Shown one piece after another: positions 38,735 to 47,400 of a stretch of DNA of 64,000 nt. The DNA lies in the NCBI GenBank assembly GCA_025594325.1, contig JANHCV010000004.1:1302001-1366000 (forward strand), in the 5' to 3' direction. Source of the DNA: Blastocladiella emersonii ATCC 22665. Taxonomy: Eukaryota > Fungi > Blastocladiomycota. Under the pieces are notes generated by a model. It was not told the DNA's origin. It worked only from the letters and a program-made list of their open reading frames with translations, and searched no databases. Every line of letters starts with the position of its first letter. The stretch's first letter is position 1. Made by a program: the position numbers and the translations under genes.

Positions 38735-41700
38735 TCAAAACTTGAGCGGCGCCTTGATCGGCGGCCACTGCTTGCGCAGGGCGTCGACGGCCTCGGGCTT
38801 GACCCACAGGAGAACCGCCTCGAGGAGGAACTTGGGATTGGCCTTCCACGCGGCGAGGAGCTGGGCCTTGGTCGTCACGTTCTTGCCGACGAGCTGCTGC
38901 GTGAGCTCAACGACCTTGCGCTGGCCGCGGTACGTGTCCTTGCTCATGGCCGACGGCGAGGTCGCGAGGACGGCGGCGAGCGGCTTGAACGTGGCGAGGA
39001 CCGCGCCCTCGAGGAGGAACCGGCCGAACCAGCTGTGGACCGCGGGCGCCTTGGTGAGCGGGAGCATCGTGGTCGGCAGCTCCCACGCGTGCGGGCCGAT
39101 GGTCGGCACCACGTGCGCCAGGATCGTGTCGGTCTTGGCGACGTACGTCGGCGGCGGCACCTCGAGCGGTTTCCCAAAGTGGCACAGGGGCTTCCCAATG
39201 GACCCGACCCACGCGAGGTCGACCTCGGTCGCGCACCGCATCCACACGTTGGCGGACCCCTGCTGCAGCTGGCTGAAGACGAGCGCCGTGGGCCGGTGCG
39301 CGTGCAGGACCGAGGTGCGCTCGATGCACGCGGGCTGGTCGTTGAGCATCGTCTGGTAGTAGAACCGCTTGGACCCGTTGCCGTACACAGTGGGCGGGTT
39401 TGGGTGCGGGATCGCGAGGTGGTCGACGAACCCGGCGAGGATGAGCTGGCGCAGCAGCGTCATCTGGTCCTCGGACGGCGGGCTCATGCGCGGGTTCATG
39501 GTCACCTGCAGGCCCGGGTTGATGGTCTGCACCATGGCCGTCAGCTGCTTGCGCAGGGCGCGGATCTCGACCATGGCCTTGAGCCGCAGCAGGTGCGCCT
39601 GGCAGAACCGCGGGGTCCCGCCCGCGTACTCGAACGCGCCCACGAGGTTGAGCAGGTACAGCGCGTCGCTGGTCCGCTTGACGCCCGCGAACTTGGCCAT
39701 GACCTTGTCGAACGGCGTCGCCTTGACATCGGCCGCGTGCTCCTCGTCCTCCTCCTCCGACTCCGAGTCGCCGCCCTTCTTGCCCGTGGCGCGGGACATC
39801 TCGTTCTGCGACACAAACACCTCGCCGACCGAGAGCGCGGCGACCATGGCGATGGCGTACTCGATGAGCCCCTGCTGCATCCCCAGCAGCAGCATCTTGG
39901 CGTAGCGCGGGTGGATGGGTAGCTGCGACATCTTGACGCCGACGGGGGTGATCTTGCCGCGGTCGTCGACGGCGCCGAGCGACGCGAGCAGCTTCTCGGC
40001 CTTGGCGAGGTCGCCGCGGTTGGGCGGCGTCGGGAACGGGAAGTTGATGACGTTGTCGATGTTCATGGCCTTGAGCTGGAGCACGACGCCCTCGATGGGC
40101 ATGCGCAGCACCTCGGGCTCCGAGAACTGCACAAACTGGTGCTCGTACACGGCCGACGAGAAGAGCCGGTAGCAGTGACCGGGGCCCGTACGACCGGCGC
40201 GACCCGCGCGCTGGTCGGCCGACGCCTTGGACGTCCAGTTGACGACAAAGTTCTGGATCGACGTGTCGGCGTCGTACACCTTCTCCTTGACCTTGCCGCA
40301 GTCGACCACGTAGCGGATCCCCGGGATCGTGAGCGACGTTTCGGCGACGTTGGTCGCCACGACGCACAGCCGGTGGCCCTCTGGGACCGCGTCGAACACG
40401 CGCATCTGCTGGTCCGTCGACAGCAGCGAGTACAGCGGCAGCACGTGCAGGGGCTGCTTGGCCGCCTCGTCGTCGTCGTCCTCGGCCTCGTCGAAATCGT
40501 CGCGCGATGTCGGGTCGTAGTCCTCGTCGAGGTCCGCGTCCTGGCCGTCGTCCTCGTCGTCGGACAGCAGAAACTCTTCCTCGTCGTCCTCCGTCGCGGC
40601 AGCAGCGCCGGCGCCAGCAGCGGCGGTCGGGGCGGCGGCCGGGAGCGTGCCCTCGGCGGGCTGCAGGGTGACCGTGGTCCCAACCTTCTCGGACCGCTCC
40701 GCGGCCCGGGCCGCCGTCGAGACGGTGGCGCCGTTGACCATGCCCGTGTCGACCTCGGCGAGGCGCTCCTCGACGGTGGCCTCGGTGTCGATCTCGGGCC
40801 TGGCCGACTTGCGCGCCGCCGCCGCCGCGGGGGCGGGAGCAGCGCGGCTCTTGCCCTTCTTACCGCTCGTCGCGACAGCAGCAGGTGCGGGAGCAGCTGC
40901 GGCGTCGAGGGGCGACGGGTACTTTTTCCGGAGACGGTTGACGACGTCGTAGATCTCGTTCTGGCCGGTCATGAAGACGAGGATGCCGCCGGGCGGGAGG
41001 CGGGCGTGGATCTTGCACACCTTGCGGTACGCCTCGACGACGTGGTTCTGCGGGGTGCGGCGGTTGAAGTGGACCGTGACGGGGAACTGGCGGGCCTGGA
41101 CGTTGATGACGGGCGGGGGTGCCGGGAACAGGCGCGTGTTCATGGTGAAGTCCGAGACGCGGAGCGTGGCCGACATGATGATGAGCTTGAGCGGGGTGAC
41201 GCGGCGCTCGGTGAAGGTCTGGCCGAGGCGGTCGGCCGTGGCCTTCTTCTGGGTCCACTCGAGGTGCAGCTTCTGGCGCAGGTTGACGACGCGGCTGAGC
41301 ACACCGATCAAAATGTCCGTGTTGATGTTGCGCTCGTGGGCCTCGTCGACGATCATGACCGAGTACCGCGACAGGAGCAGGTCGGCCGACACCTCCTTGA
41401 GCAGGACACCGTCGGTCATGAAGTGGATGCGCGTGTCGCGGTTGGTGGTGCGCTCGAACCGGATCTGGTACGACACGTGGTCGGCCTTGTTGAGCTCGTG
41501 CCCGATGCGCTGCGCCATGGACACGGCCGCGACTCGCCGCGGCTGCGTGACGCCGATGAGCCCGGGGAAGTCCGAGGCCGGGTGCGAGAACCCGGCCTCG
41601 TACAGGAACTGCGGCACCTGCGTCGTCTTGCCCGACCCCGTCTCGCCACACAGCACCGTAACGGCGTGCGCGTTGATGGTCTCCATGACGCGGTCCTCCT

Positions 41701-42741
41701 CCTGCACGACGGGCAGCTTCATGCGCGACTCGACGACGGCGGGCTCGCGGTCGGGGATCACGTAGACCTTGGGCTTGGTCGACCCGCCCGTCGACACGAG
41801 GATGGGCTCCGAGTCGCTGTCCGAGTCGTCGATGCGGCGCGATGTGCGCGCCTTGGACGACACCTCCTCCTCGGCGCCGGCAGCAGCCTTGCCCTTCTTG
41901 CTGTTCTTCTTGCGCTTCTTGGACGGCGGCGCGTCCGCTGCAGCAGCGCCCGCAGACGACGAGGTCGCGGCGTCGGCGAGCGAGGTGGTCGAGTTGACGC
42001 CGGGTCCCGAGAAATCGACGACGGTGACGGCGGACGCGGTTCGCTTGAGCGTGGAGCCCATGGTGGCGGCGGGCCCGTCAACGGCCATGGCGTTGGGATC
42101 CTCGTCGACAAACTGCTGCGACTTGTTGGTCTTCTTGACGTAGAGGTCGTAGGACGGCGTGAGGCCCATCTTCTCCTCGGTCAGGGCGCGGGTGAGGACC
42201 TCCTTCTTGGTCTCTTTCTACACGGCGAGTCGGTGGGCGGGTGTGAGCGGGCTGTGCGCGAAGGGTTTGAGTATGCGGATCAGCGTACCGCTTGGCCGAG
42301 ACGCGCCGACGACTTGAGCAGCGAGTGGTTGAAGGACGACGTGGACAGCTTCTCGAGGAGCTCGCGGTGCTCCTCCTTTTTGCTCTTCTTGGCCTACGGA
42401 TCCCATCGCTGGTGTCAGTGGCGAGCCTTACGACGAGTGGGTCGCGAGTGACGTACGAGGAACTGCTCAAAGCGCTTCTTCTTGCGCTTGCTCATGACCT
42501 CGCCCTCGGGCTCGTCCTACATTCGCGATCAATCGGTCGATGGTGAGCATTCCATGGTACACGAATCGACGAGGCCAGCATTGTAGAGCCACACCTGCGC
42601 CTTGGCGGCGGCCTTGACGGCGGCGAGCTTGCTGGCATCGATGATCTCGGCGTTGGGGTCAAAGTCGGGGACGGCGGCGGCCGGGTCCACCTTTGGCTTG
42701 GTGCGGCCGCGCTCGTTGAAGCGGACGCGGTTCTTTCCCAT
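38735..42741 (-). CDS. DHR1: DEAH-box RNA helicase Dhr1/Ecm16/DHX37
   Basis: GETGSGKTTQVPQFLYEAGF, TQPRRVAAVSMA, DEAHER, MSATLRV, LVFMTGQNEI, ATNVAETSLTIPG, QRAGRAGRTGPGHCYRL; the first exon is MGKNRVRFNERGR. Confidence 0.95.
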
Positions 42742-42930
42742 GGTGGCGCAGATTACGCGTTGCTGGGGGTCAGATACATGGAATCGTTGCTCACCATGCG
42801 ACTCGCTCGAAACGCGTGGCTAGCCGCGACGGCGAGGAGCGTGGCGCGCGGCGCGACGTGCTCGATTCTGTGTACGCGACTCACGTGGAGTGGGCTGACG
42901 CGTCGCTCCCCGGCCGCTCGACCTCGAAAT

Positions 42931-45900
42931 CAGGGGACCTGCACTCGAGGACCGGTCACGTGACTACCCTAGTTGATTGCTGTGGCAGGCGCTCTGCTGC
43001 ACACGCGCGCCGCTGCTGCAGCCGTGGCCGCGGCCACCGTCGGCGATCACCTCGCGCATCCCGCCGGCTCGAACACACATATGATCAATGTAACGGAATG
43101 TATTAAAAGTTTCCGATGAGCGCGACCGCGACCGCGACCAGCGCGTGCGCGCAATCCCGCCGCGTCCCAACCCGCTAGTAGCGCGCGTTGACGATGGCCT
43201 TGGCGTTGGTGGGTTCGGCGGTGCGGGTCTTGAGCAGCGCCGTGTCGTGGAACGTGAAGAGGACGGCGAATCGGTGGCGGTCGACGATGGTCGCACAGGC
43301 GCAGCTGAGCCTTTGCTCGCGGAACACGTCGGCCTGGACCGTGCGCGTGCGTGGGCGCGGGCGTCGAGCTCGAGCTTGCGCGCGTGGGCGGGGTCGTTGA
43401 GGAGCGTACCCGACGCTCGGGGCGGCGGTGACTGGATCGGCGTGGGGGTAACCGGGTCGGCGCGAGGTCGGCGCTCCACTCGGGGTGCGTCTCGGTGTGC
43501 CGTGATGGCGCCCGTGCGCTGCTTGGCGAGGAGGTCAAAGGACCCGAGCTCACGCCACGCCTGGTACGCGCTGAGCCGCGTCGGGGGGTGTCGGAACGCT
43601 CCCGCTGCTGCTGCCGTGAACGGACGCCGCGTGGTAGACGGCGAGCACGCGGACCTCGTGCTGCAGCGCGAGGTGTCGCGGGTCCTGGACCGTGTCGGCA
43701 CCGCCGCCGCCCACCGGCTGCTGCTGCTGGAACAGGTGCGACGCGCCGAGCGCCTAGTCGACGCCCTCGTTGCGCAGGCGGCGGTACACGTCGAGGTACA
43801 CGTCGAGGAACACGTCGAGGAACACGTCGAGGAAGAGCTGTCCGAGGTCCAAGGTCGACCGGCGCGGGCGGCAGGGTGGGCCGACGCCTCGAGGTCGTAC
43901 GGCGCGGGCTCGGCGCGCCCAATGCACTCGGCGTGGCGCGGCGGCTGCTCTTTTCGGCGAACTTGGCGCGCTCCTGGCGTCGAAGATGACGAGCGCGAAC
44001 GACTGCATCACGAGGTCGCCGCCGGCCACGTGCTACAGGACGTGAATGAACTCGGACACGACCGAGTCGAGCGCAGGGCTCGCGACAAGGCACAGGTGTA
44101 GGACGATGAAGGGGAGCGCAACGGTGGCGACCTCGTGGTGCTGGGTCTGCGCGAGCAGCGGGTGCAGGGCGCGGAAGACGGCGATGAGCGCCGAGTCGGC
44201 GCAGTGGGCGGCGAGGCGGAGGCAGAAGTGGCACGCCCACACGGCGAAGGGCACGGCGCCGGGCTGGAACACGGCGGCGGCCGCGTCGGCCTCGGCCACG
44301 AGCATGGGCTCGTCGACGCGGTACTTGCTGTCCTGCAGGTGCCGCACCGTCGACCAGTCAAAGCCGTCGAGCGCGTCGAGGCACGTCTTGCGGTGCAGCT
44401 TGAGCAGCCGCTGGATCGCGTGCGCGACGATGGTCTGCGCGAAATGGAACGCGCCGGACCGGAGGAAGGGGATCAGACACGACTTGAGCACCTCGGCGCA
44501 CAGCACGGGGATCTCCTGGTGCGCGACGACGCCCGTCTTGAGCCCGCCGTCCTTGTCGGAGACGGTGGCCTCGCCGCGCATCGCGGCGGCCGCGGCGCCC
44601 AAAAATCGCCGAAATCGACGGCCCCGAGCTGCCCACGACACACGGTCGCGCGTACGGCGGGCGTCGGGTGGTACTCGGCGACGTTGACGAGAGCGTCGAC
44701 CACGACGTGCAGGTTGCGGACCATGGCGTCGGCCGACGACGCGTGGATCTGCGTGAGTAGCGCGAGGGCTTCGTCGAGCGAGGCCTCGGCGACGACGAGG
44801 TCGGGCGACACGATGCGCGCACACACGCGGGCGAGGCGGTCCTGCAGCGAGGGCGTCGCCGATTTCGCCGCGTCGATGCGCGCCTGGAGCGGCGCGAGGA
44901 CCGGGTGCGCGTGCAGGTCGGGCGCGTCCTCGAGGACCTCGGGCGTGGCGCGCGAGAAGAGGAGGTCGAGCAGCGCCGTTGTCGGTGTACCGACATCGAG
45001 GATGGCGGGTGTGCGCGCAGCGGAGAGGAGGATCGACGGCCAGAATTGGGCGAGCGTCTTGTCGCCGGCGACGCGCGCGAGGCTGGTCCAGCACTGCACG
45101 GTCTCGGCGGGGAACTCGGCCGCGTCGTTGGCGATGAGCGAGACGGCCTGCGATGCCAGGTCGGCGACCTCGCTGCCGGCGCAGGGCACGAGCCAGTCGA
45201 GCGTCGCGAGGGCGTCGGCCGGGAACGGGCGCGACGGGCCCCACCCACCGGTCGTGCTACAGGGCCTCGCTGAGGTGCGCGATGAGCAAAAAGTCGGTGA
45301 CCGTGACAGGCTTGCTCGACACGCGCTGCGCCCACAGGAGGCCCTCGGTGTGGCGGTGCAGGCACAGCTCGACGGCGAGGTTGAGCGAGGTGCGCTCCTT
45401 GGCGGCGGCGCCCGGGATCGACTGCAGCAGCGCGCGGATCGGGTCCTCCCACGGGCCGGGCTGCTCGAGCAGGACGGCGGGTGGCGCATGGCGGCGAGGA
45501 GATGTTTGCGGAGCGCGTGCGTCAGGGTCGCGGCGGGAAGGCAAGAAGCCCGGGGAGCCTCAGCAGAGGGACAGCCGGTGCAGTTTGAGCCAGCGACAGC
45601 AGTCGCAGATGCCGCTGAACGGGATGGCGACGAGGACCGACGGGTTGGCCATGGTGAAGGTGCGGCAGAACTCGGCCAGCGAGGTCAGCACCGGTGCCGT
45701 AGAATGGCCGTCGAGCAGCAGGTCGGCCCAACCTCAGTCGGTCACGGTGACGGGAAGAGTAGCCGTGCCCTCGCCGGCTATGGCAGCGACCAACGGGTGG
45801 GCGGAAGCGCGAGGAGTCGCGCCAGGCGGTTGGGCGCAGGATCAGCGAGGCGGTGGCCGGCGGGCGAGTTGCCGTGACTCAGATACATGTTTGGTAGCAT

Positions 45901-46073
45901 TTGGGGAATTGTTGGAGTGGGCAAACGAGCGAGTGGGGAGAGGAGCGGTCGCCTACCCGCTCGCCGACGGTGGCCGCGGGCGCCCTTGCAGCGGCGCGCG
46001 TGTGTTGGAGAGCGCCTGCCACAGCAATCAACTAGGGTAATCACGTGGCCCGTCCTCGAGTGCGGGTCCCCTG
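42931..46073. mobile_element. Pack-MULE-like non-autonomous Mutator element carrying an ATR/Mec1 fragment
   Basis: Inverted repeats at 42931-43046 and 45961-46073 start CAGGGGAC and share the core TACCCTAGTTGATTGCTGTGGCAGGCGCTCT. An identical 9-bp TSD, CCTCGAAAT, sits at 42922-42930 and 46074-46082. No transposase is visible inside. Confidence 0.85.
43090..45780 (-). pseudogene. Captured fragment of ATR/Mec1 kinase (UME domain to start of FAT domain; no kinase domain)
   Basis: UME-like WTSLARVAGDKTLAQFWP...ALLDLLF...PDLHAHPVL; RGQLGAVD (compare CLGxLGAID); AHAIQRLLK; DSKY; W..HF...ALPFIVL; AYQAWRELGSFD. It contains stops and frameshifts. Confidence 0.7.
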
Positions 46074-46186
46074 CCTCGAAATGGGCAGGGACGCTGAGCT
46101 GAGCGATCGACTGCTTCCCCTCCCCCCCTCCCTCACATAAACCAACCACGAATCTGCAACGCAATCGACCCCCCGCACGCACCGCC

Positions 46187-46739
46187 ATGTCCGCGCTACA
46201 GAACGAGAACCCGACCATCTACGAGCTGTCGAGCCACGGTCCGCGGGCGCCGCGCGCGCACGAGGAGGACGAGAGCGCGGCGGACCCGTTCGACGCCGAG
46301 GAGATCTTTGACCTGATCCGCAACATCAACGACCCGGAGCACCCGCTGACGCTCGAGCAGCTCAACGTGACGCAGCAGCGGCTGATCGACGTGGACGATG
46401 CGACGGGCACCATCACGGTGCGGTTCACGCCGACGATCCCGCACTGCTCCATGGCCACCCTCATCGGCCTGTGCATCCGCGTGCGCCTGCTCCGCGCGCT
46501 CCCCGCACGGTTCAAGGTCCGTGTCCTTGTCACTGAGGGCACGCATAACTCGGAGGTCGCCGGTACGTGTTTGGCAGTGGTGTGGCAGCGCGCCGATGGT
46601 GCGAGGCTGACGCTGCGTGCGCCTGTGCGTAGTCAACAAGCAGCTCAACGACAAGGAGCGCGTGGCCGCGGCGCTCGAGAACTCGGCGCTGTCGGGCGTC
46701 GTCAACCAGTGCCTCGCGTCGGCCATTCTGACGACGTAG
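46187..46739 (+). CDS. CIA2: Cytosolic Fe-S assembly factor CIA2/MIP18/FAM96B (2 exons)
   Basis: [53 protein letters not shown]|[17 protein letters not shown]. Confidence 0.95.
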
Positions 46740-46854
46740 AGACGAGCTGTGAGACGCCGCACATTTGTATATACACTCACTCGATCATCATCTTCGTCAT
46801 CATCACGACAATCGCCCTCCGGCGCGCGCCCCACGATGCGCGCGACTCATTGAC

Positions 46855-47400
46855 CTAGATGCCGAGCTCGGACCCGGGCGCCGACATGATGCGCGGGTCG
46901 CCGCCGCTCTCATCGCCGCCGGGCAGCGGGTCCGTCTGGCTGTGGTGGTCCGACCGCCCGCCGCCGCGCCCGCGGCCCGCGTCGTCCTGGATCTGGGCCT
47001 TGGCGGCAAACTCGTCGCCGAGCTGGGCCACGTTACGCGTCTCGCCGCCCGTGTCGCGGGCCGCCTGCGCCGCCGAGCGGTCACCGAGGTCGCACACGAG
47101 GTGGCCGGGCGACGACGCGTGCGGGTCCATGGCCTCGGCGTGCGGGACTTGGCCGTGGCGTTGCGGGCCGCCGACCGACTCGCCGGCGCCAGCGCCGCCA
47201 CGGGCACCGCCGCCTTGCGGGAGCTGCTGCGCCGAGCGCACGTTGGCGTCGAGCTGGTCGAGCGGGAACATCGGCGGCAGCGGCATGGTCTCGACGGCGG
47301 CCCACGGGCGGCCGAGCGCGTGGATGTGGCAGTGCGTGCCCGTCGGCGGCTGGCCCGAGCCGGGCACCGTGTCGTCGTCGCGCGTGTGGTGCGGGTCCAT
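46855..47400 (-). CDS. Hypothetical small hydrophilic protein
   Basis: 181-aa ATG-started ORF with host-like codon use, located between CIA2 and POC5. Confidence 0.5.

Follow-up and report, generated by a model that had tools for sequence, protein, structure and literature searches.

An ATR-derived pseudogene fragment carried by a four-copy family of non-autonomous, probably Mutator-type transposons in Blastocladiella emersonii

We analysed a 64,000-nt stretch of the genome of the blastocladiomycete fungus Blastocladiella emersonii ATCC 22665 (contig JANHCV010000004.1, here labelled C16, positions 1,302,001 to 1,366,000; hereafter the window, with a G+C content of ~68%, to whose numbering all coordinates without a contig label refer). 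Our main conclusion, to which we assign a probability of about 0.8, is that a 3.14-kb element in this window belongs to a four-member family of non-autonomous cut-and-paste transposons, most probably Mutator-like elements (MULEs), which carry a transduplicated 2.6-kb fragment of the DNA-damage checkpoint kinase gene ATR and are thus Pack-MULE-like. The parts of this conclusion differ in strength. That the element is a non-autonomous transposon with terminal inverted repeats (TIRs) and a captured ATR fragment is almost certain, while its membership in the Mutator superfamily is probable and is argued from structure, namely a 9-bp target-site duplication (TSD) and a TIR of ~116 bp.

The ends of the element are sharply defined. 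It spans positions 42931-46073, and the 9-mer CCTCGAAAT touches each terminus as a perfect repeat, forming the left (42922-42930) and right (46074-46082) TSD; a length of 9 bp alone fits, 8 bp being ruled out. The TIRs are ~116 bp long, with 102 of 116 positions identical between the arms—an outer part of 86 nt (42931-43016 and 45988-46073) at 92% complementarity and an inner continuation (43011-43046 and 45961-45996). The left TIR (42931-43046, plus strand), which is at the 3' end relative to the cargo, begins with CAGGGGACC and includes GGTCACGTGAC; the right TIR (45961-46073, minus strand), at the 5' end relative to the cargo, is its inverted-repeat match. This structure is real and far beyond chance, and the inverted repeats of ~115 bp with a perfect 9-bp TSD that a preliminary description, made from the window alone, had reported are therefore borne out. 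Between the TIRs, all on the minus strand, lie an element-specific 5' spacer without ATR similarity (45765-45960), whose sole open reading frame (ORF) has 36 codons, the ATR-derived pseudogene fragment (43135-45764), and a second element-specific spacer without ATR similarity (43047-43134), which has an AT-rich patch at ~43075-43110. Similarity to ATR starts at ~45757 (query base 204) and the alignment stops at ~43135. The spacers—~196 bp beside one TIR and ~88 bp beside the other—have genome matches only in the four elements and are taken to be the backbone of the original element. Two other origins were considered and rejected: a second captured host locus, because the spacers match nothing outside the four elements, and, for the 5' spacer, copying from the flank beyond the opposite TIR, which was hinted at by two short direct repeats but for which local alignment and short-word BLAST gave chance-level results.

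The element is a member of a small family. With the entire element as query, four further places were found in the window's own assembly (32.65 Mb, 21 contigs), namely three TIR-bearing copies (91-94% identity) and the parental ATR gene (81%). Three family members are complete—the window copy (C16, cargo on the minus strand, TSD CCTCGAAAT), C18:494701-497985 and C1:1037028-1039950, the last two with 9-bp TSDs of their own (TGATCCAGC/TGATCCAAC and CTCGAAATG/CTCGAATTG)—and in the fourth, C5:403575-~406700, the outer ~95 bp of one TIR is gone. The TSDs of the three complete copies match at 9/9, 8/9 and 8/9 positions, CTCGAAAT lies within two of the three target sites, and the arms of the TIRs are identical at 102-111 of 116 positions across these copies. 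Since each complete copy is flanked by its own 9-bp TSD, the unit transposed after capture. By BLAST (E <= 10) and a 20-mer search allowing up to 3 mismatches, the genome contains seven instances of the TIR, each in one of the four ATR-carrying elements, so that it is multi-copy rather than single-copy. The preliminary description had read the locus as a host-gene capture, and an ATR fragment is indeed enclosed in a TIR transposon there, but the window element is one of four copies with the same cargo and not a private capture. Along the alignment of the copies, substitutions and small deletions private to the C5 member are also densely clustered at columns ~1880-1950.

The source of the cargo is found on a different contig from the window element. 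An uninterrupted frame of 1914 codons at C1:3372539-3378280 carries the Pfam domains HEAT_ATR, M-HEAT_ATR, FAT, PI3_PI4_kinase (2-240 of 241) and FATC, with the kinase domain at codons 1599-1841. When it is compared with solved structures, human ATR is the top match (1e-148), followed by yeast Mec1 (5e-85), both ahead of ATM (8e-62), SMG1 and mTOR. Its FAT, kinase and FATC domains, its ATR-specific HEAT regions and its best match to ATR among the phosphatidylinositol 3-kinase-related kinases place it in the ATR family, and it is the intact parental ATR whose separate existence the preliminary description had supposed. The parental region that aligns to the element, C1:3373016-3375882 (81-86% identity), has no TIRs, and the captured stretch is intron-free in the parent. 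At the protein level, a genome search finds this region of ATR in the parent and the four elements only. ATR is essential in well-studied organisms and single-copy here. A gene that is Tim22-like by sequence lies on the opposite strand ~1.3 kb upstream, which limits further 5' exons of ATR.

The cargo is a fragment of this gene in an advanced state of decay. Its ATR-derived part (~2.63 kb) corresponds to parent codons ~157-1120, or approximately residues 940-1900 of human ATR as offset from the structure match, a stretch of middle HEAT repeats that runs into the beginning of FAT. It therefore stops before the kinase domain, and both the kinase and FATC are absent. DNA identity between element and ATR is ~86% over ~2.5 kb, and tblastn of the parental frame against the window element gives 55-64% identity over 517 and 342 amino acids. 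The window copy contains 15 frameshifting indels and four in-frame stops (at ~45259, ~44035, ~43756 and ~43177), so that, besides lacking the kinase domain, it does not have the open frame of an ATR kinase. The three long ORFs in the interior match no Pfam family, transposase or otherwise, and the remaining interior consists of sequence homologous to ATR or of the element-specific spacers. The earlier picture of a decayed fragment lacking both a kinase domain and a transposase is thus confirmed, and its ATR-like interior of ~2.9 kb, while ATR-derived, is shortened to ~2.63 kb.

When the four copies are aligned to the parent, in the parent's frame, the number of frameshifting indels per copy is 12-15, and 3-4 homologous codons in each have become stops. 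Common to all four are two TAG stops (parent codons 890 and 1099) and at least nine indels, including deletions of 46, 28, 70, 15 and 50 bp and several small insertions; the common frameshifting deletions are at ~45579 (46 bp), ~43980 (28 bp), ~43934 (70 bp) and ~43437 (50 bp) in the window. Because these lesions are common to all copies, the cargo had become a pseudogene by the time the family spread. Lesions private to the window copy are deletions of 82 bp (~45476) and 34 bp (~43146) and the stops at ~45259 and ~44035. The cargo encodes no working protein, and any effect on ATR could come only via RNA or recombination. It also contains a 12-bp tandem repeat (GGTACACGTCGA on the plus strand, 43771-43830, alignment columns 2671-2720), which has most units in the window copy, fewer in the other three and a remnant in the parent. 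Repeat-induced point mutation (RIP) was considered as a source of the private substitutions and rejected: their transition/transversion ratio is 1.84, and C>T changes fall mainly at CpG, with no CpA bias.

Decay has not been uniform along the cargo. In a central, "refreshed" part of 1.4 kb (44019-45404, minus strand), the sites at which all four copies depart from ATR amount to only 4.2%, and none of the disabling lesions is common to all of them, whereas in the old, heavily decayed 3' third (43146-44018, minus strand) such common differences make up 18.3% of sites (Fisher p = 2e-23), together with at least seven common indels, at least six of them frameshifting, and both common TAG stops. Synonymous divergence (dS) between copies is instead higher in the centre (0.03-0.09) than in the 3' third (0.015-0.03), and the ratio of nonsynonymous to synonymous divergence (dN/dS) against ATR is 0.31-0.37 in the centre versus 0.8-0.95 in the 3' third. 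The relationships among copies also change from tract to tract: columns 958-1576 of the alignment group C16 with C1a and C18 with C5, columns 2055-2430 group C16 with C5 and C1a with C18, and over columns 1818-1879 the C5 copy has the ATR state at every family-derived site. Identical patterns stand at adjacent sites 31 times, where 8.6 would be expected (p < 5e-5). The copies are mosaics of one another, and the uneven divergence together with these tract-wise patterns excludes one history of uniform neutral decay. The simplest reading, which we infer from the alignment, would be that the copies exchanged sequence by ectopic recombination or gene conversion and that their central part was replaced by sequence of the parental ATR.

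Which superfamily the family belongs to is a matter of weighing. Mutator elements have a TSD of ~9 bp, with 8-11 bp across the superfamily, and long TIRs of ~100 bp or more, and the ATR element agrees with Pack-MULEs in its Mutator-length TSD, its long TIR, and the absence of a transposase from a host-gene interior whose parent is elsewhere. The genome harbours MULEs of its own. At C1:5089045-5094362 there is a 5.3-kb, apparently autonomous MULE with an 867-aa FAR1+MULE ORF and TIRs of ~95-105 bp, which consist of four TATTCTGCCCCCC units, and the TSD GCAAAAAA (8 bp, or 9 with one more base). A deletion derivative of it at C17:0.85 Mb (98% identical, 1.3 kb missing) and a 2.7-kb MULE-related element at C21:268438-271148, with 88-bp TIRs at 99% complementarity and the 8-bp TSD CATGCGAG, also have MULE-domain matches, and the latter looks recently inserted. 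The apparently autonomous FAR1+MULE element indicates that the Mutator superfamily is present and has recently been active in this genome. Several points nevertheless weigh against our reading. The TIRs of these three MULE-type elements—tandem TATTCTGCCCCCC units with GG termini—are unrelated to the TIR of the ATR elements, the sole overlap being a GGTCAC(A/G)TGA motif, and the cleanest reading of the TSD of the genome's MULEs is 8 bp, not 9. Neither the BLAST nor the 20-mer search with the TIR found an element in the assembly that combines this TIR with a transposase or with another cargo, and the ATR element departs from a Pack-MULE in that its TIRs are not homologous to those of an autonomous MULE with a MURA-type transposase in this genome. 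Its CAGGG terminus presumably resembles the termini of hAT elements. Two further points concern the history of the family: the direction of conversion and its partners are deduced from the alignment of the four copies and the parent, and the junctions do not show the mechanism of capture, a capture from DNA looking like one from RNA because the parent is intron-free across the captured stretch. The assignment to MULEs made in the preliminary description thus stands as far as TSD and TIR lengths go, but the TIRs do not tie the element to the three MULE-type elements; of the things it proposed to look for, an apparently autonomous MULE is present (C1:5.09 Mb), although with unrelated TIRs, and other pairs of this TIR with different cargo were not found, as all seven TIRs sit on ATR elements.

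The mismatch with the TIRs of the genome's MULEs, their apparent 8-bp TSDs and the CAGGG termini would be better accommodated if the same structure belonged to another superfamily (hAT, Merlin or P), and hAT transposases and one Merlin element are present in the genome. We consider this unlikely, since all three complete copies have a TSD of exactly 9 bp, whereas hAT elements have an 8-bp TSD and short TIRs, far below the 116 bp seen here. The 43-bp TIRs of the one Merlin element are unrelated, and outside the four ATR elements no locus, hAT and Merlin loci included, matches the TIR at E <= 10. An autonomous partner within the genome was likewise considered and rejected, as the TIR searches gave only the seven family TIRs and the TIRs of the MULEs and of Merlin are unrelated. 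The PF00872 transposase profile has zero matches in the genome, and the elements with PF10551 have TIRs unrelated to that of the ATR element. The Merlin-type element (DDE_Tnp_IS1595, C19:1917750-1919232), with its perfect 43-bp TIRs, looks young.

Two other explanations concern the cargo and the nature of the unit itself, and both are far less probable. The low dN/dS of the central 1.4 kb and its freedom from a disabling lesion common to the four copies could be taken to mean that the cargo is retained as a functional, truncated ATR-like gene, such as a decoy or a dominant-negative HEAT-repeat protein. This is very improbable, because the central part of every copy is disrupted by copy-specific frameshifts and stops, the frame is already broken upstream by lesions common to all copies (the 46-bp deletion and one of 1 bp), dN/dS between copies is ~1 in the 3' third, and a low central dN/dS is expected if this part was recently copied from a constrained parent. 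That there is no transposon at all, but a segmental duplication of ATR fragments in which inverted repeats and 9-mers are incidental, has nothing in its favour beyond the absent autonomous partner, and is effectively refuted by the boundaries of the copies and by the TSDs: similarity between copies ends exactly at the TIR termini, and three different 9-bp repeats flank copies on different contigs.

The history of the family can be outlined as follows. A founder element picked up the middle of ATR (codons ~157-1120, without kinase and FATC) between its TIRs, possibly via template switching or gap repair, the routes invoked in models of Pack-MULE and Pack-TIR formation (PMC8277862). The captured fragment then decayed to a pseudogene, after which the whole unit (TIR-spacer-ATR fragment-spacer-TIR) transposed, with repair of 9-bp staggered cuts, and so reached at least four sites, which lie on three contigs. 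This movement would have taken place in trans, by a transposase recognising the ~116-bp TIRs and probably of MULE type. One insertion, that of the window copy, landed between the genes DHX37 and MIP18, in a divergent promoter of ~286 bp. Finally, ectopic gene conversion may later have replaced the central 1.4 kb with parental ATR sequence and passed it between copies.

Comparison with known systems shows that this is a new example rather than a new principle, because gene capture is already known in plants, animals and some fungi, and no new mechanism is revealed. Pack-MULEs have been described in rice, maize and Arabidopsis (Jiang et al. 2004, as cited in PMC6446971 and PMC8277862). The elements reported here share with these plant Pack-MULEs long TIRs, a 9-bp TSD, a host-gene interior without transposase and with its parent elsewhere, multiplication after capture and, in the window copy, insertion beside gene 5' ends. 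They differ from them in having a blastocladiomycete host, TIRs that are not tied to any autonomous MULE, and a single family with a single cargo; furthermore, whereas the median capture of Pack-MULEs is ~305 bp (PMC8277862), the cargo here is a single piece of 2.6 kb, which is unusually large. In fungi, hAT elements have transduplicated histone H3 in Pyrenophora tritici-repentis and in Mycosphaerellaceae, both Dothideomycetes (PMC3538342, PMC6710886). There too, a DNA transposon took up and amplified a housekeeping gene, and the fates of the copies were set by processes acting after duplication. However, those elements are of autonomous size, have an 8-bp TSD and carry a whole processed coding sequence in copies that are intact or destroyed by RIP, whereas the element described here is non-autonomous, has a 9-bp TSD, carries part of a gene and displays no RIP signature. 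A survey of 100 animal genomes found Pack-TIRs and no Pack-MULE (PMC8277862). One of these Pack-TIRs, Drosophila Ssk-FB4, resembles the present family in being a multi-copy fragment within TIRs with a distant parent and in the tendency of copies to lose a TIR, seen here in the C5 copy, but it is coding and under selection (PMC8277862), whereas the ATR cargo is a pseudogene. A survey of fungal DNA transposons reported few DNA elements in Blastocladiomycota (PMC5751038), and in the literature searched no fungal Pack-MULE-like element was described and Blastocladiella was not linked with Mutator elements. Since most documented gene capture by Mutator-like elements comes from plants, a clean case with several copies in a fungus of an early-diverging lineage widens the known range. 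The mosaic pattern also makes the family a compact, manageable model of ectopic conversion between a host gene and the pseudocopies that transposons carry, with no RIP signature seen here in the genome.

The insertion of the window copy has a clear genomic setting. On its left is a DHX37/Dhr1-type DEAH helicase gene (38735-42740, minus strand; Pfam DHX37_C, HA2, Helicase_C and OB_NTP_bind) with a long exon at 38735-42169 (ATG at 42169). Its probable first exon, read from the alignment, has its ATG at ~42740 (MGKNRVRFNERGR... / MGKNRVRFNERGRTKPK...), ~180 bp from the element, and the stop codons between this exon and the long ORF (42170-42745) make a helicase intron probable. On the right is a MIP18/FeS_assembly_P gene (46187-46858, plus strand; Pfam PF01883), whose ATG is 105 bp from the element. 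With the helicase starting at ~42740 and MIP18 at 46187, the element sits in what was formerly a divergent promoter of ~286 bp. Promoter insertion is seen for the window copy only, as the ORFs flanking the other three copies have no Pfam match. A continuation of ATR into the left flank via the minus-strand ORF at 38735-42169 was considered and rejected, because this ORF is the DHX37-type helicase.

A last question is whether the family affects its parent. Perfect matches between element and ATR extend up to 74-81 bp, and the genome contains at least four Argonaute-type genes; judging from the sequences, an antisense or small-RNA effect on ATR would be feasible. It is a more speculative and doubtful proposition that the pseudocopies are not inert, with ectopic conversion with ATR still ongoing and transcripts, arising by read-through or driven from the TIRs, perhaps feeding RNA interference with ATR-matching small RNAs. 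If this were true, a mobile element would modulate, or endanger, a DNA-damage checkpoint kinase. Two of the Argonaute (Piwi-domain) matches, at C17:1404132-1405055 and C17:1586553-1587476, have identical scores and lie 182 kb apart, which suggests a recent segmental duplication.

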